The position numbers and the translations under genes are program-made. 64,000 bases of DNA from Piromyces finnis finn (lineage: Eukaryota; Fungi; Neocallimastigomycota): NCBI GenBank assembly GCA_002104945.1, contig MCFH01000006.1, forward strand, positions 434,001 through 498,000. The letters are read 5' to 3'. The notes under the pieces are model-generated. The model saw nothing but the letters and a program-made list of their open reading frames with translations. It ran no database searches and was not told where the DNA came from. Below are positions 12,057 to 26,035 of this stretch, piece by piece (the first letter of the stretch is position 1; each line of letters begins with the position of its first letter).

Positions 12057-12650
12057 TTAAGCCATAGAAATTTGACTACGAACACTTTCTAATCCTCTAC
12101 GTTTAGCACGCTTAACCATGAAAAAGATACCAGCTGATGAGAGAGCAGCAGCTCCTACAAGACCAGATGCAATCTTAGCTGGATCAATTGTAGTATCAGT
12201 TTTGCTAGTGTCATCAAGTGCAGCAATTGGTGAACTTTGAGCTTCTTGTTGAGCAACAGCAGCAGCTTCACCTGAGGCACCTGTAAACATTGGAGCTGAA
12301 CTTTCATTTTGTTGAACTGGTTCTAAAGTTGTTCCTGGGGCAGCAGCACTTTGTGGGGTAGTTTCTTCTGGAACAGAGGAATCAGGAGTACTTATTGGAG
12401 GGCTTACTGGATTACTTTCAACATCTGAGCTTTCTCCGTAAGCATCTAAAGCATCAATTCCAGCATTATCTCCATAATCATCTGAAATTTCACCACCTGC
12501 ATTAAGATTATCATAAGTGTTTTGTGGAGCAATATCTGTACTATCTGGAATTTGATTGCTTTCTAAATCTGAAACTATACCTCCATCATAAACTTGGGCG
12601 TAAGCTAAAGCAAATGAAGCAGCAATGGTTAAAATTCTTGTAAATTTCAT
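12057..12650 (-). CDS. Secreted, acidic S/P/A/T-rich cell-surface protein with a C-terminal TM anchor and basic tail (197 aa, intronless)
   Basis: Signal peptide MKFTRILTIAASFALAYA, low-complexity body, TM IASGLVGAAALSSAGIFFMV followed by KRAKRR. GC content is higher than the surroundings and codon use is strongly biased. Confidence 0.85.
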   Translation of the reverse strand: MKFTRILTIAASFALAYAQVYDGGIVSDLESNQIPDSTDIAPQNTYDNLNAGGEISDDYGDNAGIDALDAYGESSDVESNPVSPPISTPDSSVPEETTPQSAAAPGTTLEPVQQNESSAPMFTGASGEAAAVAQQEAQSSPIAALDDTSKTDTTIDPAKIASGLVGAAALSSAGIFFMVKRAKRRGLESVRSQISMA

Positions 12651-13514
12651 TTTGTAAAATTGATTTATTTATAAGTTTAAAAAATCTTTATTTTTAATTA
12701 TGAATATTAATATTTATTGCTATAATTATATATATATATTGATAATAGGCTAAACTATATATATATTATAAACTGATTATTTATTATAATCAAATAATAT
12801 TTAAATATATTTTCACTTTATTTTGAAATTTTTTAAAATTATTTACTTAAATTTTTTTTTTTGTGAAATATTTTTCTCTTTATATAATAAATAATATTTT
12901 CTAAACAAAATAAAAAATGATATATGGCGTTTTTTTTCTATTCCTTTTTAATTATGTTTATCATTGTTTCAATATATTTTGTATATCAATATTTATTTAT
13001 TGGATTTATTTTAATAAAAATTTAATATATAATATGAAATAGAACCATTAATATATATTAATAAAATGAGTTTTATTTAAATAATATATTATAGTATATT
13101 AATGTTATATAATGAAATAATATGACAATACTTTATTGAACGTTACACGGACAAATATTGTTACCGCTTAATTTTTTATAATAACTTAATATTAATTAAA
13201 GTTTTTAGGATTGGAAACAAAGTGTATAATATAATTTACTTTATGTATTAAAACTTTAATTATAATAATTAGCTAATCCTTAAATTATCATAATAAAGTA
13301 GGTCGTTCCAGATTATTTCTTATTAATATAAAATCATAAAATCATTTTATTGCTAGATGAAGTATTCCATTTCTTTGAATTTTATGATAATTATATAATA
13401 TTACTTTATATTGCTTTGTATATTTATTTATAAAAAATTAATGTATATTAATGTTATTAATGTATTACATTTTTATTGATGTGACAAAGTGATTTTTTTT
13501 CGTATCCTTTACAT

Positions 13515-14506: not shown

Positions 14507-17500
14507 ATGGCGCTATCAAATATTATTTATATATATATTTTTTTAATTTTATGTTACTCTGATATAATATTTTCACTAAATCTAGTAGTAGATGATAATG
14601 AAGACAGTATTGAAAACTTGGCATCAACAATTTCAAATTATAATAAAAATGAAGAAATTACTGTAAATTTTGATAAAGATTATTATAAAGTATCTAATAA
14701 TGGAAGAAATAAGTTTAATATAAAATCTGATGTTGTCTTCTATAGTGACAAAGGTGCAATTTTAGATTTTCAAGAATCAGGAATTACAGCATTATATCTT
14801 ACATTTATTGAGAAAAATTATAAAAAAGTAATTTTTAGAAATATTACATTTTATAATTATGGAGAAAATATTGCTATGATATTGGTAGATTCATTAGAAG
14901 ATTCAAATAAATATACTGTTGAGTTTGATAATTGCACTTTTACGGATAGTAAAAGTAAAATTTATTATAATAAAGTAGTATGCATTAAGCCTGTACAATC
15001 TGTTCCATACACAATATTTAATAATTGCAAATTCATGTTAGTATTATAACATTAAAAAATATTTAGATTATATTTTATATAATTGATATATATTAAATTA
15101 ATTACATATTATTCTAGTAAATCAACCCTAGCATTTTATATCTATCACTCTCAAAAAGATTATAATGTTGTAAGTTCATGTAAATGTTATACTATTACAA
15201 TAAATAATTGCTATTTTGATAATGTTTCGTCTATTGGAACATTAAAAACCGGTGAACTCATCATAAATAATAGTATGAAATTTTATTATTTTTATGAATA
15301 TCATATTAAATAATTAGTTGATTAGTATTAAACTATTTTTAATAATTAAGGTTATTTTACCAATCTTCATGGTGATATAGATAATTACAGTGCATTATTA
15401 TTTTCTGAAACTAGAGAAAATGTAATAAAAATAAATAATTCAACATTGGAAAATATTAATGTTCAATATAATCTTCCTCTATTTTATGTTACAAGAACAA
15501 CTTTTGAGTAATATATATATATATTGTATATATAGTATACAATTTAATAATATGAAACTAATCTCTAATCTCTATTAATATATATTAAAAGAATTTATAA
15601 TACAACTTTTACAAATTGTCATACAAATTCAGAATACCTAATATATTCAAAATTATCAAAAGATTATAATGGAATAAGTATAAAAGACTCTATGTTTTAT
15701 GGTAAATGAAAATTAATATAATAATTATTCGTTCATTTGATAAATAAAAATTTTTTATGCGACTAATAAATATTTATTGTTAAACAATTAAAAATATAAT
15801 ATAATATAATATAATATAATATAATATAATATAATATAATATAATATAATATAATATAATATAATATAATATAATATAATATAATATAATATAATATAAT
15901 ATAATATAATATAATATATAATATAATATAATATAATATAATATAATATAATATAATATAATATAATATAATATAATATAATATAATATAATATAATATA
16001 ATATAATATAATATAATATAATATAATATAATATAATATAATATAATATAATATATAATATAATATAATATAATATATAATATAGATATTAGTTCTTTAA
16101 TTGATGGCATTGAAAATGATATTAAAATATCAAATAGTATATTTAAAAATATTACATCACGATCATCGTTACCTATTATTTTAAACTCTAAAGACTCAAC
16201 TGTTAATATTAAAAATTCAATTTTTAAAAATATTGTGTATGGTTATTATAATTATTTTATTTTATATAACATAAAATTGTATTTATTTATTAATTTATTT
16301 AATATATTATGTTTTTCACATATTTAAATTATGAAAATAAAGTTCTCTTAGAAGTGCCTTATTTAATGAAGAATCTACATATTATATAATAAATAGTGAT
16401 TTTGATGATATTATATCGAACTCAAAAGCATTAATAAATGTGTTATATCATGATGCTTCATTTATCGACTCCACATTTAATAAGATTTTATGTAATGGAG
16501 ATGGTGATGATTCTTCATTAATTATTTTTAATTCAAGTGAATATGCTAATTCAATTGAATTCCAAAATATAATATTTAAAGATTCCCAAACAAATGGTGA
16601 TTTTATTAAAATTAATGGATATTCGTCAATTGTTAATTTTAGAAATACTACAATATACAATGTCTTATCTTATGGTACCATATTAAGTAGTAAATCAATA
16701 GGGGTTGGTTATTTAAATAATAAAAATATAATTGATGATATTTTTATATTTATTTATGATATAATATAAATATAACATTAACATTATTAATTAAATATTA
16801 AATTCTAGTCAAATATATTAATAGAAAATAGTTATTTTTACGATAATAAAAATATAAATAAACTAAAATGTGGATTAATATTCAGTAGTAATGATATTAA
16901 ATTAAATATTAAAAATACTGTTATTAATGGTAATACAATTAAAAATAATGGAGGTGCATTGTAAGTATATTATATAAATGCTTTTATAAATATTATTATG
17001 CTAGTCTACTATATATTATATATATATATATAATATAATGATCAATTAATAATATTAACTGTACAATATATATAATACCAAGATGTTTTAATAATATAAA
17101 TTCAATGAACATACATATTTCTTCGTCTGTTTTTAAAAATAATAAAAGTTTAAATGGAGGTTCTATGTATTTTTATCAGCCAATCAACTCAGAAACTAAT
17201 AACTCTATAGATCTAATTAATACACAATTTATTAATAACGAAGCAGACCAATTTGGTGGTGCAATTTATTCAAATTTTGAATTAAATGTATTAAATGCAG
17301 TAAATATTACTTTTATTGAAAATCATGCATACGCTGGTGGTGCATTATATATCAATAGCAATTATAAAAAAACAATAAATTCTTTAAATTCGAAAAATAT
17401 ACTTTATATTAATAATACTGCAGAATCCCATGGTAAGGATTTAGCTACTGACCCATATATAGTTAATTTAATGCCATCGGAATTAAGAACTTTTAAAATA

Positions 17501-19621
17501 ACAAGCGGTGAATTATTTCCATTACGTTTCAATCTAACTGATGAATATGGACAAATAGTAGAAGATTTATCTAAATTTTACTCAAATATAATACTTACTA
17601 TAAATATTTCAAATAACGACGATGAATTAATTAAAGTATACGGGAACTCGTGTTATTTTTCGAAAGGTAATTTCATTTAATTTTAACCTTTTATTTCCTA
17701 ACATTTGGAATTATTATACTAAATTTGTTTTTAACTATTTTTTAATTAATAATACTTGATTAGGAATTTGTGAATTAAATAATTTTAAAATATATTCTTC
17801 TTCCCCTACAGTAGTATATTTCAAAATAGACATAGAAAGTAGAAATAATAATATAAAAATTAGTAATAATAATGAATATTTAAATTTAACTGTAAAAGAT
17901 TGTACAACGGAGCAATTTAAAATATTTCATAAAGAAAAAAAAGATGATATACAAAGTATATATCATTGTGAAAATCCAATTTGCAATGATGAATGCCCTA
18001 TTAAAAATAACACAGCTATTTGTATTAAAGGAGAGAATGGTGATATAAACAATAAAATAAATAATATTTGTAAATGTGTTGATGGTTGGACTGGTGATAA
18101 TTGTGATACAATGGACATGACTATTTTTAAGTATATTATGCATATTTTAATATTTTATTATTTAATTGATAAATAATATATTCTTTTATAGTCTAACTGA
18201 TTCATAAATAATATATAAAATTTATAGTGATTTGAATTATCGTTTAGTTAGTTTTCCAATAATTATTTCTATTATTGGAACATTAATATTTATCACTATA
18301 TATAGAAAAGAAAGAATAATAGCAGATAGTGGATACTTTAAATCTACTTTAGTTTTAATTGGAATATTATTTTATCAATGTAGCCTCAATTATAATAATT
18401 TTTCAAATTTTACAAATTGTTCTATAAAATTTATATTTAAACATCTGGGATTTTTAATAATTTATTTACAATTCTTTTTATATATTTCAACAAGTTATGA
18501 ATTAGGAATTGATATAAATGATATTAATCTAATTAATAAAATGTCAGGAAGTCAAAGTCAAATTCAAAATACAAATAAAAAAATAATAAACAGAATTTCA
18601 AGAATTATAAATATTAATAAAGAAAATTCAGTTATGGAAAAAAGTAAAGAAACTGAAAGTACAAGATTAAATGAATCAATTATAAAGAGTTTTGAAAATG
18701 AATTAACTAAATTCAGTGATATAAACAATAATACTAGAAGTAGAAATAATAGTAAATGTGTTTCATCAAAATTTTCATTACTTGATATAAGAGATGATGG
18801 ACATGATAATTTAAAAAAATTAAATAAATGTATAAAATCTATTCACGAATTAATTAAAGAGATATCTATAATTTTTATTAGTTCATTTATATTAATAATT
18901 GGAATAGTAATATATAATGGAAATAGCACAGAAACTTTGTATGTTCAAGAGTATAAAGGAAAATGGAGATATAACTGTCCATTGGATCATATTAATATAA
19001 TGTTTAATTTGATAGAAGCTATTTTAACATTGTTTCTTTTATTTATTGTATTTAAAGTGTTGAATTATACTTATATATTTAAAATTGTAAAGTATATTGG
19101 GTACTCATCCTTCATATTAATTGCTGCAGGACCTATGGCTAGCGTAATAATTATTCCCATAATATATAATAAATAAAAAATCTAATATATTAAATAATTA
19201 AACTAATATATATATATATATTCATAAAATTATTGTATTGTATATAAATTAATAGTTAATTAGTTATGCTGTATTATATAATAATAGTCATTCCTTTATT
19301 ATATATAATGCACTTATTAATGGAGCATGCAACTGGATATTATTAATTCTTTTTTCATGGGATAAATTTTATTATATTTTAACAAAAAAGGGGAATGATC
19401 CTAATTATTATTTTTTACATCTAAAAAAGCATAGTAAAGAATGCATTATTCATCATTCTTATTACTGTAATTGTATAGAAATGGATAATGAATATAATCT
19501 AGATATCATAAATAAATACATAGATTTTTATAAATATTGTTCTCAAATAATTATACTTGAAAATGGAAGATTGAAATATGTAAGACTAAAAAATAAAAAT
19601 CAACTAAATTTTGTAATATAA
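14507..19621 (+). CDS. Large receptor: signal peptide, parallel beta-helix (pectin-lyase/POMP-like) ectodomain, EGF-like module, class C (7tm_3)-like seven-TM domain
   Basis: About 10 exons join in frame with GT-AG introns. Repeated F.N..F.N and GGA(I/L)Y motifs (NNGGAL, NGGSMYF, FGGAIYS, AGGALYI); EGF-like CKCVDGWTGDNC; seven hydrophobic segments from 18240; ECL2 KWRYNCPLD; stop at 19619-19621. Confidence 0.85.
15793..16083. repeat. (ATAAT)n pentanucleotide microsatellite, ~290 bp, intronic
   Basis: Directly visible tandem array with a few ATAT phase slips. It generates the spurious 15763-16110 (IILYY)n ORF. Confidence 0.97.
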
Positions 19622-21356
19622 AAACCTATTTTGATACCTTTAAATAAATTATCACATTCACATTCCTGTGATATATTTTATAAGTACAAATTATTTTAAA
19701 TATTGAATAGCAAAACAAAAATCATTTAAACCTATTAGAATAAATTAATATTTAATATAATGCGTTTTATATTTGCTATTAATTAAATCAAATCAATGAA
19801 TAATTCTGTATAGTAATATTATATAATATATTTCCTTTGATTTTCAAAATTTAATTCAAAAGAAGTATTGATTCTTCATAAAATAAACATTATTATGATA
19901 ATAATTAATATTATTTTATCTAATACTAAAAAAAAAAAAATTTATTTAAAATTCATATATATTTTCTAAAATCTTAATTCGTTTTATTTTAATAATAATA
20001 AAAGTATAAAATGAAACTATTTTCTTTTCGATTATTTATTTATTGAAATTATTTAAAATAACTAAGTCATAAAAAAAAAGTTAATAAAAAAGTCTTATTA
20101 ATAATTGATAAATAAATACTAGCATTTAATAAATTTATATTTGTATATTATTTAATTTTGGTATAAATAATAAAATAAATAATGAGGATAGTATTCCGTC
20201 TTTTATATGAAGATATTAAAAATATAAATATTAACGAAAAGGATAGAAAATTCAAAAATAAATTAATATATATTTTTAATGTTAATTGTGGTATATGAAG
20301 AAGATAATTATAGTTAGGAGATAAGAAATAATAATTCTGAATCTATCATAAGATACAATCAATTAAACTGATGATAATAAAATAAAATCAACAAATAATA
20401 ATTTATATCATTAGAAAGTAATATTGAAAAAATGCAAAATATGAATATTCTTTCATATTTTTGCATTTAAATTCAATATACATTATCTTGCGGGTGTAAT
20501 ATAGAATTCTTTAATTGATTATATATATAATACTAATTTAGAATCTTTTATATAGATATCATTGTATCTAAAATAATGAATTTAACATAGACAGAAATGC
20601 AGAAAAGTAATAAAATAATAAAATAATAATAAATAAATATAGCAAAGGCTATAATTTAAATTAATTATATGTGTAAAATTTTATAAAGGTATATTAAAAT
20701 AAATAACATAGAGAGTATTATTATAATATTTTTAATATTTCAAAAACTCAAAAAATTAGATATATATGAACAATTATTGAATGGAATAAGATATTTAGAT
20801 ATAAGAATTGAAACAAATAAAAATAACAAAATGATAAATATTTATAAAAAAAAAAAGCCATGATATTATAAAAACAATATATAATTTCTTTGAATAAATA
20901 ACAAATAGTTTTTGTTTAAATTTCTTATTATTTTATATTAATTAAATATTTAGTTCTTTTTTGGTGTTTTTTTTTTAACTTTGCAAAAAAACCAAATATT
21001 TTTTTAATATCTTTTTTAATTTTAATACTAGATTAATAAATATATTAAATGTGGGGTAAATAGACTTTTTTACCTACCAAAAAAACTATAGTTAATATTA
21101 TACTTTTTTAATAATACTAACCAATCATTTTAATTTAATATAAATAATATTTTTATATATTTAATATTTTTAATATATTTTTTTTTTTTAAAAACACAAA
21201 CTATAAAATAAAATAATTTTGAAAAATATTGTTTAATATTTTGTAGATTTAGAAAGGTAAACTTACAAGTTAAGAAAAAAAAAAATTATTGTTAAATTAA
21301 TAATATAATATTGGAATAAAGATACTAAAATAAAATAATGTTATTTTTAATTTAGA

Positions 21357-22660
21357 ATGTTATTTTTCTTAACTTTAACACAAAACTGTAATTTAGCCTG
21401 TACCTATTGTGGTTCAGATGGTAATGCTGATATCGAAAATATATTAGAAGAAGATCAACCAAAAGAAATCAGATATAAATTAAATAATTTAGAAAAATTA
21501 AAGAATGTAAATATAAATACTTATTACTTAAAATATTTAATTTTTTATGAAAAAAAGAAAATAAATATTCAAATATTTATATATTTTATAAAATCTCTAA
21601 ATAGATTAAAGATGATTTAATTATATGTTTTTACGGTGGTGAACCATTATTAAAACCAAGAATTATTAAAAAGGTTATTGAAATGCATCCAAATGCTAAA
21701 TTCTGTTTACAAACAAATGGTACTTTATTAAATCGTTTCAATACTAAATTATGTAATCAAATGGATACTATCTTAATTTCTGTTGATGGTGGACCAGAAG
21801 TTACTAACAAAAGTAGAGGAAATGGTACTTGGGAAAGAGCTATTGAAAATGCTAGATATATCAGAAAGAATGGATACAAGGTAAAAAAAATATTTATATA
21901 GTATATTTTTTTAATATATTATAATTTCTTATTAAATAATTATTAAAATAAATATATTTTTTTTATTTTAAAGAATGATCTTGTAGCTCGTATGACTACT
22001 TCAAATGTTAGTGATATTTACAGAGATGTCAAAGATTTAATTGAATTAGATATTTTTGATCATGTTCACTGGCAATTAGATACTCAATGGTCAACCCCAT
22101 GTTTCGCTGGTTATGATGATTTCTTAGATTGGAGAGATAATAATTACAATGTTGGTATAACAAAATTAGTTAATTGGTTTGAACAAGAAATTGTTGAAAA
22201 TTCCAGAGTATTAGGTATTGCTCCATTCTTACAAGTTATTCATGATATGATTACTGGAAGAAAAACCCGTCTTCGTTGTGGTTCTGGTTTAGATTCTTTC
22301 AATGTTGATACTGGTGGTGAAATTAATCCATGTCCAATTGCCCCAGAAACTCAAGAATTAGCTATGATTCAAGATGATAACTTCCAAACTCCAGAATCTT
22401 TAAGAGATTCTGTTAAAATTGCTGGTTTATGTACTGATTGTGAAATTTTAGATTTATGTGGTGGTCGTTGTTTATACGCCAATCAAACTATGTGGTGGGG
22501 TGAAGAAGGTTTTAAAGAAGTTTGTGTTACTGTTAAACATTTAATGAATGAACTCAAACGTATTTTACCAAGTATTAAGCAAGCTATTGCTGATGGTAAA
22601 ATTGAATTAGAAGACTTAAACTATCCAAAATATAATAACTCTGTTGAAGTTATTCCATAG
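21357..22660 (+). CDS. Radical SAM/SPASM protein of the AF0577 (TIGR04084)-like family, 3 coding exons
   Basis: Exons 21357-21506, 21605-21880 and 21974-22660 join in frame. Motifs: CNLACTYC (CxxxCxxC), FYGGEPLL, LQTNGTLL, ISVDG, SPASM-type CGSG...CP...CTDCEILDLCGGRC, WWGEEGFKEVC, terminal NNSVEVIP. Confidence 0.9.
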
Positions 22661-23200
22661 ATTAAAAATATTTATTATAAATTATTCATAAATATCAAAA
22701 AAAAAAAACACTAAAAACTTATAGAATATATTTAAAGTAACAATTTTAAACAAACAATGTAAAATTTTAATCGATTTTCTTTTTCTTTTTATCTCTTTAA
22801 ATTGTAATGAATTTAAAAGTATAATAAAAATTTTAGAATTCATATAACTTATTAAAATAATAAATAAAAAATTTAATTTGAAATAATCAATATTTAGGGA
22901 AAAAATAATCTTTTTAAAGGAAAAATATAAATGTATCATGAAATATAAGAAATATTTATTTTTTAATATTATAGATAATTATTTTATTTTATTTAAAATA
23001 AATTTTCATTTTACATATTTAATTACTATTCTATTTTCTAAAAGTTTGAATGAATATTAATATTTATTATTATGAATATTACAAAGAATATATATATCTA
23101 TTCTCTATAATCTTTTATTATTATTTTTTATTTGCTTACTAGAATGTATATTTAATAATTGGATTAAAGATAGATTTTATTTTACTATAGTTAATCATAT

Positions 23201-26035
23201 TTATTCAACATCATCTTCATCAACAACAGATGCATTTCTATTTCTCATTTCGGTATGATAAGCATTACTACTTTGAGATACTGTTGAATTTAAAATAGCA
23301 AATGGACTAACAACACTGCTTTTATTAGAAACGCCTGTATTCATCATCATTTCATCTCTAAATTCTTTAAATTTTCTTTTTTCTTCATATACTAATCTAT
23401 CTTTATCTTGTTGGGAAAGATTATTTTCAGATAAAGCTTCATAGAATAACATATATACATAGGAGCTTCCATTATTAAATAATTCCATTTCTGGATCTAT
23501 AATTAATTCAACAGAACTATCTGAAATTCTAAACCATTGATATTCATCTAATTCTGCTTTGGTATCATTATTCTTTTCATTTTGACTTTCTGCTTTTGAT
23601 TTATTTGTGGTTAAATATTCAGGTTTTTTAAATAGCTTTTCCCATTCAGCATAATCTGTAACTTTATTACTTATAAGCTTCTTAATTTGAGCTTGTAAAT
23701 CTTTACTTAAACTACCACCACGGCGAACTCTTCTATAAGCAATAAAATGACCATAATCATGACTACCAAAATGATAAACAGCAGATTGTAAACGGTAAAA
23801 ACTATCATAATATTTTGGATCATTTGGATTCATTAAATTCTATATTATATTTATAAAAAATAAAAGTTAGTATTTTTTTTTTTTTTTGAAAGTTTTTAAA
23901 CTTATTTTACTTAATAAATAATTTAAATATATAATAGTTACAAAACTTGTACTGAAATATTCATTATTGTCCTTGTTGGTGTTTGTACACCATGGTCTAA
24001 TATTTAAATATTCTGGATATTTAATTGGACTATTATTTCTCATATTATAGCTATATGAAACATGAATAGATCTTTGGAAGTGAAAAGCAAGAATTTTTGG
24101 TGGTTTTGCAATTAAAACTTGTTTTGTTGTACTTCTAGATACCATTCTAACTGGATGAATTTCTTTTGGATATTCAATTTTATCTAATGGTATTTCATGC
24201 ATATCTTTTTTAAAATCTATAAAACTTTTTTGTAAATTTTTCAATCTTTCTTGTTCTTCATTTAATGATTTTTCTATTTCTTTAATTGTTGGTGTATTAG
24301 ATTTTGATTTCTTTTTATGTGATTTTTTATTTTTGGATGATTTTTTATCATTTTCTTCAGATACTGTTTCAGTTTTTTCCTTTTCTTCTTTATGAAGTTT
24401 ACTTTTTTCTTTTTTTAATGCAAGTAATTCTTTTCTAACATCAATTTTTTCTTTTATTTTTTCCATTTCATCTTCAGTACCTTTGATTGTTGCTATTAAT
24501 GAACAATATTCACAAACTTTGTCGGTAATTATTTCAGGTGCTATATATGATTTAAGTAATGATTCTAAGGTACATGTTTGCTAAAAAAAGGTAACATTTA
24601 TTAAATAAATTATATCTATTAATAAAATATATTTTAAATATTAAATTAAAAAGTATATTATATATACATTATTTGGAGGAATTAAGGTTATTTGATCAAT
24701 AACAAAATGACGAATTGCTGTCTTTTTACATTAAATAAGTATATTAATTTTTTAAAATTAGTTTTAAGTTATTATTTTCATAATATATATATAAACATTT
24801 AATGATGCTATTAATTTTTATTTTTTAAATAAACTTACTGTATGATTACATATTCCACATGTAATTTTACTTGCTATTAATCCTGTAAATGGACTATTTC
24901 TATTTTTTAATTGTTTCTTATTATTATTGATTAAGTTTCCATTATATACTACATTTCCCTTAATAAATGAAGAATCTCTAGTTTTATTCATAATTGATTT
25001 TAAAAAAGAAATATCAAAAAGAGATGTTGTTTTTTTATTATTTAATATATTTTCTTCTTCGGAAGTCAATTCTGAAGATAATAATGAATATAATTCATTT
25101 GCATCCTTTATTAAATTTAAAAATAAAAACAAAAAGATATTTTAATTATTATATTTTTAAAAAATTTTTATGCAAAAAATAATGATTTTATAAACCTGTT
25201 GATCATAATAAGTCAATCTTCTTGAAGCTCCCCTTGTTAATGAATTATGAAAATCTGAAGGTCTAAATGATCTCATACCACTTTTGGTATTATTAAGTTC
25301 TATTATGTATAAATTTGCACATTTAATTTAATAATAAATATATGCATTTATTTAATTTCAAAAATTCTATACTTTGAAATTCATACTTGCTGTAATATCT
25401 ACTAAAGATTTTGAAATTGATTTATCATCTATTTTTTCAGTTAATAATGATTTAATATATTGTTCATACTGTAAATATATTAAAAAACTTGGCAATGAAG
25501 AAAGAGACTTTCATTTATAATATAAATTTATATATAATTATACATTAATTATTTAATGTTTATTTTAAATAATAGTATCAATATATAATAATTACTTGTA
25601 AAATTGAATTCATAAAACATGTGTTTCCCATATTTGTTAATCCAGGTGGGAAAAATGCAACTATTAAATAATGATATATAAATATATAAATTATATAAAT
25701 AAAATAATAGCATTAAATGACTATTAATAACATTTGAATTTCTTTTTTAATCAAAATATTATTAATAAAATATATAATATTATCACTAAATATATATTAC
25801 CACCATCATCATCGTCATTTTTCTTATTCTTATCTTTTATTTTTCTTTTTTTCCTACTTTTGCTTTGACCGGTGTGATTAGAATAATGGTAATTATATAT
25901 TCCAATGCATAGAATTATTGATAAAACACCAACTCCGTATTTTACAACTTGATTTTCAGTCATTGATTCCATGAATTTTTTAATATCATATAAATTTATA
26001 TATTGATTTATAATATTTTCGATACCGTGTACCAT
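23201..26035 (-). CDS. Ubiquitin carboxyl-terminal hydrolase (USP family) with N-terminal TM anchor, USP30/Ubp16/Ubp1-like
   Basis: TM YGVGVLSIILCIGIYNY; Cys box PPGLTNMGNTCFMNSILQ; finger Cys pairs CGIC and CEYC; His box HFGSHDYGHFIAYRR; WFRISDSSV. Multi-exon. Confidence 0.88.

Follow-up and report, generated by a model that had tools for sequence, protein, structure and literature searches.

The gut fungus Piromyces finnis carries a real, intron-bearing and host-adapted three-exon gene for a radical SAM/SPASM enzyme of family TIGR04084 (rSAM_AF0577), and this gene falls within a single, monophyletic branch of eukaryotes in a family that is otherwise archaeal almost throughout. The family would have entered eukaryotes once, from an archaeon probably of an Asgard lineage, and would then have spread among eukaryotes partly via eukaryote-to-eukaryote transfer, including one event between fungi and oomycetes in either direction, with no direct gain from rumen archaea. 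We consider the explanation as a whole, in which the product is a cytosolic enzyme with this history and the mechanism described below, to be probable.

The window, a 64,000-nt stretch of P. finnis contig MCFH01000006.1 (positions 434,001 to 498,000, forward strand), contains the gene at the positions listed in Table 1. The spliced product was 100% identical over 370 aa to ORX57164.1, deposited as 'radical SAM enzyme [Piromyces finnis]', and the deposited gene covers the same 1304-nt span on a scaffold of 1.31 Mb. The initial annotation, made from the letters, had proposed a complete enzyme of about 370 aa interrupted by spliceosomal introns of 98 and 93 nt, and the exact model bore out both proposals. 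GC content was 24–32% in the exons versus 9% and 4% in the introns. The host-like codons and typical eukaryotic neighbours that had been claimed for the gene were likewise found, with a GC3 of 0.146 inside the range of the other long ORFs of the window (0.10–0.26), a 1282-aa gene upstream and a UCH hydrolase downstream. The protein has no N-terminal extension, since its cluster motif already begins at residue 11, just like that of the archaeal homologues; this agrees with the proposed absence of a targeting peptide. A TargetP call of a signal peptide is reported for ORX57164.1 (Ciach et al., 2024; PMC11291939, supplementary table) and we regard this call as spurious, caused by the hydrophobic first beta-strand. 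For a suggested 5'-UTR intron (21258-21355), UTRs taken from related transcripts were aligned to a spliced and an unspliced model, and with neither did the scores depart by more than about 2 SD from those of shuffles.

Table 1. Positions of the P. finnis TIGR04084 gene and its parts in the window.
Feature	Position	Strand	Basis and remarks
Whole CDS, three exons	21357-22660	+	Splice model; 1113 nt encoding 370 aa
Exon 1, codons 1-50, containing the radical SAM cluster motif	21357..21506	+	Splice model; TIGR04084 profile positions 3-37; matches ORX57164.1
CX3CX2C motif (C11, C15, C18), site of the SAM-cleaving [4Fe-4S] cluster	21387..21410	+	Read from sequence; invariant in alignment
Intron 1, 98 nt, GT..AG, phase 0, 9% GC	21507..21604	+	After codon 50
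Exon 2, codons 51-142	21605..21880	+	PF04055, 46 bits; TIGR04084 profile positions 43-129
GGEP motif, exon 2, with the SAM-binding GGE (G61-G62-E63)	21635-21646	+	Read from sequence
QTNG motif, exon 2	21710-21721	+	Read from sequence
Intron 2, 93 nt, GT..AG, phase 0, 4% GC	21881..21973	+	After codon 142
Exon 3, codons 143-370 and stop	21974..22660	+	TIGR04084 profile positions 131-347, 206.7 bits; TIGR04085, 32.7 bits
Exon 3 content: FDHxHWQ (family-specific), SPASM domain, C-terminal invariant YPKYNNSVEVIP	21974..22660	+	Invariant alignment columns
Seven SPASM cysteines (C244, C262, C295, C298, C304, C308, C326)	22277..22525	+	Invariant; predicted ligands of two auxiliary [4Fe-4S] clusters

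Against TIGR04084, for which membership is set at a curated cutoff of 225 bits plus end-to-end coverage, the whole protein scored 332.6 bits (E = 2.3e-99), with residues 7–370 matching profile positions 3–347 of 347, and the three exon pieces gave collinear matches of 16.6, 87.9 and 206.7 bits. The second-best NCBIfam family, the PapB-type ranthipeptide maturases (NF047865), reached 107.8 bits against a cutoff of 340, and the anaerobic sulfatase maturase profile TIGR03942 reached 50.6 bits against a cutoff of 349. The AF0577-type assignment thus stood when set against anSME, and the name 'Anaerobic sulfatase-maturating enzyme' on the Phytophthora citrophthora orthologue is unsupported because the TIGR03942 score is below cutoff and the resemblance structural only. 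Exon 2 alone matched PF04055 (46 bits; gathering score 29.5) and the SPASM domain (TIGR04085 / PF13186) gave 32.7 bits with the TIGR04085 profile (cutoff 27). The CxxxCxxC, GGEP, QTNG and cysteine-rich SPASM tail named in the initial annotation were all found, and they were invariant in an alignment of 14 sequences from eukaryotes and Asgard archaea (C11/C15/C18; Y60-G-G-E-P64; Q86-T-N88). The SPASM membership pattern (CX9-15GX4C, gap, CX2CX5CX3C, gap, C) was complete with seven cysteines (C244-x12-G257-x4-C262; C295-x2-C298-x5-C304-x3-C308; C326), each invariant in the same alignment, as were the residues of two family motifs, FDHxHWQ (F170, D171, H172, H174, W175, Q176) and YPxxNNxxExIP (Y359, P360, N363, N364, E367, I369, P370).

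Orthologues were found in four gut-fungus genera: Piromyces, Neocallimastix (two copies), Anaeromyces and Pecoramyces. Intron positions were compared between Piromyces and Neocallimastix; in the latter the introns lie after codons 50 and 142, both in phase 0 and at the same codons as in P. finnis, and the gene was therefore resident before the two genera split. Values of dN/dS were 0.025–0.059, showing strong purifying selection on the gene. Seven transcript contigs from close relatives (roughly 1.3–3 kb) carried an uninterrupted 1113-nt ORF and aligned to the locus as three blocks with both introns skipped, and in the 96.8% group of contigs four printed 3' ends finished in A-rich, poly(A)-like runs. 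From these intron-less contigs of relatives we infer that the P. finnis gene is spliced as well. In 'organism A', four runs contained 0.54–0.69 of the 31-mers from positions 21200–22800, approximately the expectation for intron-free mRNA, and the exact pattern of the exon 2 to exon 3 junction had 0 matches among metagenome contigs.

Eukaryotic homologues were present in Neocallimastigomycota, an ascomycete, Phytophthora, Blastocystis, Euglena, Archamoebae, parabasalids, Anaeramoeba and Pygsuia, with no animal or plant protein among the matches listed. The 19 named eukaryotic sequences formed one clade (SH-aLRT 100), which was also recovered with a 17-sequence subset (UFboot/SH-aLRT 100/100) and after addition of Euglena and T. 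vaginalis (SH-aLRT 99), and its stem was long (0.33–0.42). The only 'bacterial' contig inside the clade carries SPRY and GDA1/CD39 genes and is therefore taken as a mis-binned eukaryote. Fungi and the oomycete formed a subclade (100/99) with Neocallimastigomycota and the Phytophthora group as sisters (98/62; SH-aLRT 86 in the tree with Euglena and T. vaginalis), and the closest kin of the gut-fungus proteins were the ascomycete Cirrosporium and Phytophthora rather than gut protists. No vertical spread of orthologues across aerobic fungi was seen; beyond the gut fungi, Cirrosporium and one close relative were the only fungal carriers found. The Cirrosporium intron lies three codons from intron 1 of P. 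finnis, in the same phase, which speaks, suggestively but not decisively, against a gene foreign to fungi. Pelomyxa and the fungi have no intron position in common, the Pelomyxa introns lying elsewhere and in other phases, the genes of Anaeramoeba and P. sojae are intron-less, and no gene model with GT/GC-AG introns could be rebuilt for Blastocystis.

Among prokaryotes the family was mostly archaeal, as had been stated at the outset. A GTDB search returned more than 570 matches, of which the best 80 loci were all but two archaeal with Njordarchaeota at the top (47–48% identity), and no rumen methanogen genus or order appeared in the titles of those best 80 loci out of the more than 570 matches. 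A Protein Atlas search gave generic archaeal radical SAM clusters only. What the initial statement overlooked was the broad eukaryotic branch, and because this branch includes the aerobes Phytophthora, Cirrosporium and Euglena the implied tie to anaerobiosis is weakened. The nearest prokaryotes to the eukaryotic clade were all Asgard (Njord, Heimdall, Hod, Asgardarchaeia, Atabeya). As the tree is unrooted, the Asgard sequences are scattered and the sister group of the eukaryotes had a support of 56/90 (UFboot 56), we rate an Asgard donor as likely only.

The source first put forward for this gene, rumen archaea or else other gut anaerobes, found no support. Such an origin would require that a gut-fungus ancestor received the gene straight from archaea of the rumen or gut, or from bacteria, apart from other eukaryotes, and that introns were gained later. 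The overwhelmingly archaeal make-up of the family among prokaryotes, the methanogens living alongside gut fungi and the few archaeal (Methanobacteriales) transfers into gut fungi that Murphy et al. report all speak for such a gain; however, the gut fungi nest inside the eukaryote clade (100/100), beside the ascomycete and Phytophthora, and a tree that forced them outside it with the archaea was rejected by the AU test (dlnL 75.3, p-AU 0.00275). The top archaeal identities of 47–48% were, moreover, to marine or hydrothermal Asgard MAGs, versus 63% to Phytophthora over exon 3, and neither this gene nor any other radical SAM entry occurs in the text or available supplement of the HGT preprint by Murphy et al. 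Direct gain is therefore very improbable in our view. Contamination or mis-assembly, with the ORFs coming from a co-cultured prokaryote, has an archaeal family name and nothing more in its favour, and its probability is practically nil given two spliceosomal introns at 4–9% GC, the host-like GC3, a 1.31 Mb scaffold with eukaryotic genes on either side and the same gene with the same introns in another genus. The earlier judgement that this is not contamination was correct: the gene is a genuine fungal one.

Two further histories bear on how the gene moved within eukaryotes. In the first, which is possible though doubtful, the ancestor of the gut fungi received the gene from an oomycete or another eukaryote, and the gene is foreign to fungi. 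This transfer accords with the sister grouping of Neocallimastigomycota and Phytophthora, with the rejection of stramenopile monophyly (Phytophthora with Blastocystis; AU p = 0.0116), with the near absence of the gene from other fungi and with the flag raised by Ciach et al. (2024), but Cirrosporium and P0144 (intron-bearing, in an ascomycete context with an NLR neighbour) branch just outside together with P0005, fungal monophyly with Phytophthora outside was not rejected (p = 0.317), and a fungus-to-oomycete transfer, or vertical fungal descent followed by loss, fits equally well. Vertical inheritance would instead bring the enzyme from the Asgard-related host at eukaryogenesis into the last eukaryotic common ancestor, with massive loss leaving scattered and mostly anaerobic survivors. 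We judge this unlikely: although one well-supported, long-stemmed clade spans Obazoa, Amoebozoa, Metamonada, Stramenopiles and Euglenozoa and has only Asgard archaea as nearest prokaryotes, the branching inside it disagrees with the species tree (stramenopiles p = 0.012; Amoebozoa p = 0.027; Metamonada p = 0.047), introns lie at different places in Pelomyxa and fungi with none in Anaeramoeba, the distribution is very patchy and the sister group is weakly placed (56/90). The rejections of amoebozoan and metamonad monophyly were marginal, and the extent of transfer between eukaryotes is uncertain for this reason. If vertical descent were true, the family would mark the Fe-S radical chemistry of the archaeal parent. 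The eukaryotic clade would then be a protein maturase ancestral to eukaryotes that animals, plants and most fungi have lost, acting on a protein conserved in archaea as well as eukaryotes, an idea to which we likewise give little credence. The preferred reading remains a single archaeal entry followed by partial spread from eukaryote to eukaryote.

Gene neighbourhoods were compared over 80 archaeal loci, with a flank of up to 8 kb on each side, and no partner was conserved across phyla. Lineage-restricted neighbours were a convergent GNAT gene (15/80 loci), a VTT/DedA protein (11/80) and S26e (4/80). No small precursor-peptide gene was conserved beside the 80 archaeal genes or visible in the flanks in the P. 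finnis window, where no substrate gene adjoins the enzyme gene, as the initial annotation had observed, and no neighbours were common to P. finnis, Cirrosporium, Pelomyxa, Anaeramoeba, Blastocystis and P. sojae.

The N-terminal [4Fe-4S] cluster would reductively cleave SAM to a 5'-deoxyadenosyl radical, which would take a hydrogen atom from the substrate, and the SPASM domain is predicted from its cysteine pattern to hold two auxiliary [4Fe-4S] clusters. Since a leader-peptide recognition (RRE) domain is absent, the enzyme may, in the manner of anSME, modify a protein or peptide whose gene lies elsewhere. Its first auxiliary-cluster segment is of the CteB type, without the extra cysteine of anSME. 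This may point to an open coordination site on the iron that a substrate cysteine could occupy, as in enzymes that form thioethers; the fourth ligand could also be a different residue. Sequence alignment, along with what the structure paper on CteB reportedly describes, is the basis for this reading of the first auxiliary cluster. Because fold and cysteine pattern resemble those of anSME and CteB, a leaderless protein- or peptide-modifying role is, by analogy, the most likely one. For the substrate itself we slightly favour a protein or peptide, and a small molecule, cofactor or lipid seems rather unlikely. Also considered and dropped were an O2-independent stand-in for deoxyhypusine hydroxylase or for further protein hydroxylases of the oxygenase type, and connections with sulfatase maturation or with diphthamide synthesis.

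TIGR04084 enzymes are uncharacterised in every organism. Searches for 'TIGR04084' or 'AF0577' found no literature on either as a family, the AF0577 matches being accession-number noise, and nothing on the TIGR04084 family emerged from searches that paired radical SAM with anaerobic protists, with Asgard or with Phytophthora. Already public are the gene's annotation as a radical SAM enzyme and its flag as transferred with an oomycete donor: Ciach et al. (2024; PMC11291939, supplementary table) list ORX57164.1 as an HGT candidate that has 2 introns and a support of 100, with Phytophthora as approximate donor. New here are the one coherent eukaryotic branch of TIGR04084, with gut fungi, an ascomycete, Phytophthora, Blastocystis, Euglena, Entamoeba, Trichomonas and other anaerobic protists, and the Asgard archaea as its nearest prokaryotic kin. 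For gut-fungus evolution, the gene shifts from the class with a rumen prokaryote donor to the smaller eukaryote-related class. The substrate, once found, would reveal a new radical-SAM modification common to archaea and diverse eukaryotes and could matter for parasite and oomycete biology.

The structure model (pLDDT 81, pTM 0.85) had its best PDB matches in Foldseek with anSME (TM about 0.7), followed by CteB, ChlB, TigE, SkfB and SuiB, all of them protein or peptide modifiers. The anSME entries (PDB 4K36-4K39; TM 0.65–0.71, E down to 3e-13) share with the fungal protein a compact radical SAM barrel plus SPASM without an N-terminal RRE, and anSME also has a substrate protein encoded elsewhere. 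However, identity to anSME is only 19–20%, the extra cysteine in the first auxiliary-cluster segment of anSME is absent, and nothing ties the fungal enzyme to sulfatases. The top PDB sequence match was the sactipeptide thioether synthase CteB (PDB 5WGG/5WHY; profile E = 3.4e-23), which has the C-G-S-G...C first auxiliary-cluster segment in common with the fungal protein, and the seven SPASM cysteines align with the auxiliary-cluster segments of both CteB and anSME. In contrast, the cluster motif lies near residue 105 in CteB versus residue 11 in the fungal protein, from which the leader-recognition domain is absent. Neither the N-terminal RRE nor the adjacent precursor of RiPP maturases with leader recognition (CteB, SuiB, SkfB; sactipeptide/ranthipeptide type) was found. 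The archaeal TIGR04084 proteins, such as those from Njordarchaeota, Heimdallarchaeota and Hodarchaeales MAGs, differ in that the fungal gene has two spliceosomal introns and the AT-rich codon usage of its host, and its product belongs to a distinct, long-stemmed clade of eukaryotes. They are nevertheless collinear with the fungal protein over the full length (40–48% identity), are similarly of about 360–370 aa without extra domains, and display the same CX3CX2C, GGEP, QTN, FDHxHWQ, 7-Cys SPASM and YPxxNNxxExIP elements.

Three open reading frame pieces fused through two introns into a single coding sequence, whose predicted product of 370 aa was identical (100%, 370/370 residues) to the deposited 'radical SAM enzyme [Piromyces finnis]' (ORX57164.1; P0138). 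The deposited gene covers the same 1304 nt of MCFH01000006.1, a scaffold of 1.31 Mb, and the gene model of the initial annotation is thus that of the public record. The window is very AT-rich (13-28% GC in 2 kb bins), with the coding sequence (GC 0.297, GC3 0.146) inside the GC3 range of the window's other long open reading frames (0.10-0.26). The earlier statement that the gene is not contamination was borne out by its introns, its host-range GC3 and the large scaffold with eukaryotic neighbours.

Coordinates of the P. finnis TIGR04084 gene, its introns and its neighbours in the window
Feature	Position	Strand	Description
TIGR04084 gene	21357-22660	+	three pieces, 1113-nt coding sequence
Intron 1	21507-21604	+	98 nt, 9% GC, GT..AG, phase 0
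Intron 2	21881-21973	+	93 nt, 4% GC, GT..AG, phase 0
Upstream neighbour, 1282-aa protein gene	14507-19621		typical eukaryotic gene
Downstream neighbour, UCH-type ubiquitin hydrolase gene	~23200-25660	-	typical eukaryotic gene

The whole protein scored 332.6 bits against TIGR04084 (curated cutoff 225), and its exons, as separate pieces, matched this profile collinearly (3-37, 43-129 and 131-347 of 347). Other NCBIfam families were far under their own cutoffs (PapB, the next best, 107.8 bits vs 340; QhpD 69.6 vs 453; anSME 50.6 vs 349), and the AF0577 family call made from the sequence was therefore correct. A Pfam search detected PF04055 and NCBIfam the SPASM domain TIGR04085 (32.7 bits vs a cutoff of 27). 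Across an alignment of 14 eukaryotic and Asgard members, C11, C15 and C18, Y60-G-G-E-P64, Q86-T-N88 and the seven-cysteine SPASM pattern (C244-x12-G257-x4-C262, C295-x2-C298-x5-C304-x3-C308, C326) were invariant, as were a family-specific F-D-H-x-H-W-Q motif and the extreme C-terminus, Y-P-x-x-N-N-x-x-E-x-I-P.

Orthologues with 95-98% identity were found in Neocallimastix (two paralogues), Anaeromyces, Pecoramyces and Piromyces sp. E2. The Neocallimastix paralogues (P0130 and P0131; N. californiae and N. lanati) are near-identical and lie on different scaffolds, with one copy in the other gut-fungal genera. The Piromyces sp. E2 model (OUM60764.1; P0121) is short (345 aa vs ~370) and probably mis-modelled. 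In N. californiae the introns (132 and 76 nt) follow codons 50 and 142 in phase 0, as in P. finnis, and are therefore older than the split of these genera. Metagenomic gene calls of the same cluster included partial products (73, 105 and 222 aa; contigs of up to 13 kb) and full 370-aa products (contigs of 1.2-1.4 kb). Seven contigs carrying the full product were examined, six encoding a protein 96.8% identical to ORX57164.1 and one a protein 97.6% identical, and the 1113-nt reading frame was uninterrupted in 7/7. Against the window they aligned in three blocks, with the alignment breaking off at 21505/6 and 21880 and resuming near 21605 and 21974; the four 3' ends read, all of the 96.8% group, finished in A-rich, poly(A)-like runs, and one full-length-product contig carried an adapter remnant. 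This shows spliced mRNA in close relatives of P. finnis. For P. finnis splicing the evidence is indirect, in that, of the 31-mers sampled from 21200-22800, a fraction of 0.54-0.69 was present in four runs of one organism, where by our own arithmetic intron-free mRNA would give ~0.65-0.70 and same-strain genomic DNA ~1. The dN/dS among gut-fungal orthologues was 0.025-0.059, and the gene is under strong purifying selection in gut fungi.

With exon 3 as the query, a word-index search recovered 1201 relatives, and the best named matches beyond gut fungi were all eukaryotic: Phytophthora spp. (63% identity), the ascomycete MAG Cirrosporium novae-zelandiae (58%), Pygsuia, two Anaeramoeba species, Tritrichomonas, Histomonas, Pelomyxa, Mastigamoeba, three Entamoeba species and Blastocystis. 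Trichomonas vaginalis and Euglena gracilis came up in a second search. Asgard archaea ranked after all named eukaryotes, at 43-49% identity. The Blastocystis sp. JDR model (P0026) is short (332 aa vs ~370), could not be reproduced from its own locus using GT/GC-AG introns and is probably mis-modelled. The gene in Cirrosporium is genuinely fungal, with a single phase-0 intron of 203 nt and a NACHT/NLR gene beside it on a scaffold of 763 kb. The Cirrosporium intron is three codons away from intron 1 of P. finnis, within a linker of variable length, the four introns of the Pelomyxa gene differ in position from those of P. finnis, and the Anaeramoeba and P. sojae genes are intron-less; intron positions do not help in tracing the origin of the gene. 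Three ENA metatranscriptome clusters (P0167, P0169 and P0180; ~430 aa, one with 389 member sequences) form an abundant subgroup of the eukaryote clade beside Anaeramoeba, with an N/K-rich N-terminal extension of ~60 aa, which may represent a targeting sequence or translated 5'-UTR.

Scanning 185,579 GTDB species gave at least 572 matching stretches encoding a relative. Almost all of the 80 loci kept were archaeal, and they included Njord-, Heimdall-, Hod-, Thor- and Promethearchaeota, Thermoplasmatota, Bathy- and Korarchaeia, Methanoperedens, Archaeoglobaceae and Hydrothermarchaeota; none of the 80 record titles named a rumen methanogen genus or order.

In maximum likelihood trees (LG+C20+F+G4), 19/19 named eukaryotic sequences together with metagenomic ones formed one clade (150-row tree; SH-aLRT 100, stem 0.42), which was recovered at 100/100 (UFboot/SH-aLRT) in a careful 83-row tree and at SH-aLRT 99 after adding Euglena and T. 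vaginalis. The gut fungi fell in a 100/99 subclade with Cirrosporium (and protein P0144), protein P0005 and the Phytophthora group. The initial annotation had proposed acquisition from rumen archaea or other gut anaerobes. Direct acquisition from rumen archaea is rejected in view of membership of this pan-eukaryotic clade, whose nearest prokaryotic kin are Asgard-like, and of the AU test, in which a tree grouping gut fungi with archaea, apart from the other named eukaryotes, was rejected (dlnL 75.3, p = 0.00275). A strictly vertical line of descent from the last eukaryotic common ancestor is disfavoured; the pairing of the stramenopiles Phytophthora and Blastocystis was rejected (p = 0.0116), and monophyly of Amoebozoa (p = 0.027) and of Metamonada (p = 0.047) marginally so. 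Our reading is that the gene entered eukaryotes once from archaea, probably from an Asgard donor lineage, and that some eukaryote-to-eukaryote transfer followed, including one transfer from fungi to oomycetes or the reverse. A tree joining Neocallimastigomycota to Cirrosporium with Phytophthora outside was not rejected (p = 0.317).

The region where the eukaryote clade attaches was weakly supported (56/90), and its other members are Asgard-labelled except for two MAGs nested in the Njord group. These two ('Thermoprotei archaeon' QMSP01000024.1, L013; 'Nitrososphaerota archaeon' CAZFGR010000006.1, L022) encode TIGR04084 proteins tightly within Njordarchaeota, reflecting either outdated NCBI labels or movement of the gene between lineages. 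The only 'bacterial' sequence within the eukaryote clade came from an 'uncultured Lachnospiraceae bacterium' MAG (CAZHGC010000051.1, 1-8373; 51% GC; L011) and branches beside Mastigamoeba and Pelomyxa. Because this contig carries SPRY-domain and GDA1/CD39 apyrase genes and its TIGR04084 protein has an acidic N-terminal extension, it almost certainly comes from a gut protist and was mis-binned into a bacterial MAG.

Ciach et al. (2024; Evol Lett, PMC11291939) give ORX57164.1 in their supplementary table 'Protein summary', along with ORX79565.1, ORY41121.1 and ORY24503.1, in Cluster_520 (152 proteins, 4/152 fungal, adjacent-branch support 100), with 'approximate donor Phytophthora', 2 introns, KO K06871 and TargetP 'SP'. 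A gene-level HGT call with oomycete affinity was therefore already published; the gene and its HGT status were public, and novelty is modest. Murphy et al. (bioRxiv 487215) reported 34 eukaryotic events and six archaeal events only in gut fungi, all Methanobacteriales, and neither their text nor the accessible supplement mentions radical SAM. Since aerobes (Phytophthora, Cirrosporium) and the facultative Euglena have the enzyme as well, it is more than an anaerobic adaptation. What remains of interest is a strongly conserved, uncharacterised and putative radical SAM/SPASM maturase common to archaea, gut fungi, oomycete crop pathogens and several human parasites.

The AlphaFold2 model of ORX57164.1 (pLDDT 81, pTM 0.85) was closest in fold to anSME (4K36-39; TM 0.65-0.71), followed by CteB, ChlB, TigE, SkfB and SuiB. 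All of these are protein- or peptide-modifying radical SAM enzymes whose C-terminal cluster domain is SPASM or related to it. The TargetP signal-peptide call is in our view an artefact, because the modelled barrel has its first beta-strand at residues 2-6 and the N-terminus is flush with archaeal N-termini in the alignment. In established radical SAM chemistry a cluster cleaves SAM and the 5'-deoxyadenosyl radical abstracts hydrogen. Here the CX3CX2C cluster would cleave SAM reductively, the resulting radical would take a hydrogen atom off the substrate, and the SPASM cysteines would hold two auxiliary clusters. A literature search found no paper on the function of the family. In P. sojae (JH159157.1; L096) an NPP1 gene lies upstream of the orthologue and a 289-aa TP_methylase gene (PF00590, a family that also takes in diphthine synthase; 12188-13057) lies 3 kb downstream, probably by coincidence.

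Because ORX57164.1 lacks an N-terminal leader-recognition domain, and no partner or precursor gene conserved across phyla was found at 80 archaeal or six eukaryotic loci, it most likely acts, like anSME, on a substrate encoded elsewhere. We lean slightly towards a protein or peptide as that substrate, and a small molecule, cofactor or lipid is less likely. By sequence profile the top PDB match was CteB (E = 3.4e-23), with anSME next, and in ORX57164.1 the first auxiliary-cluster segment shares the pattern C-G-S-G...C with CteB and lacks the extra cysteine of anSME. In CteB a substrate cysteine reportedly binds to an open iron site of the first auxiliary cluster, and the CteB-like segment of the gut-fungal enzyme may point toward thioether-type chemistry, as a lead rather than a result.
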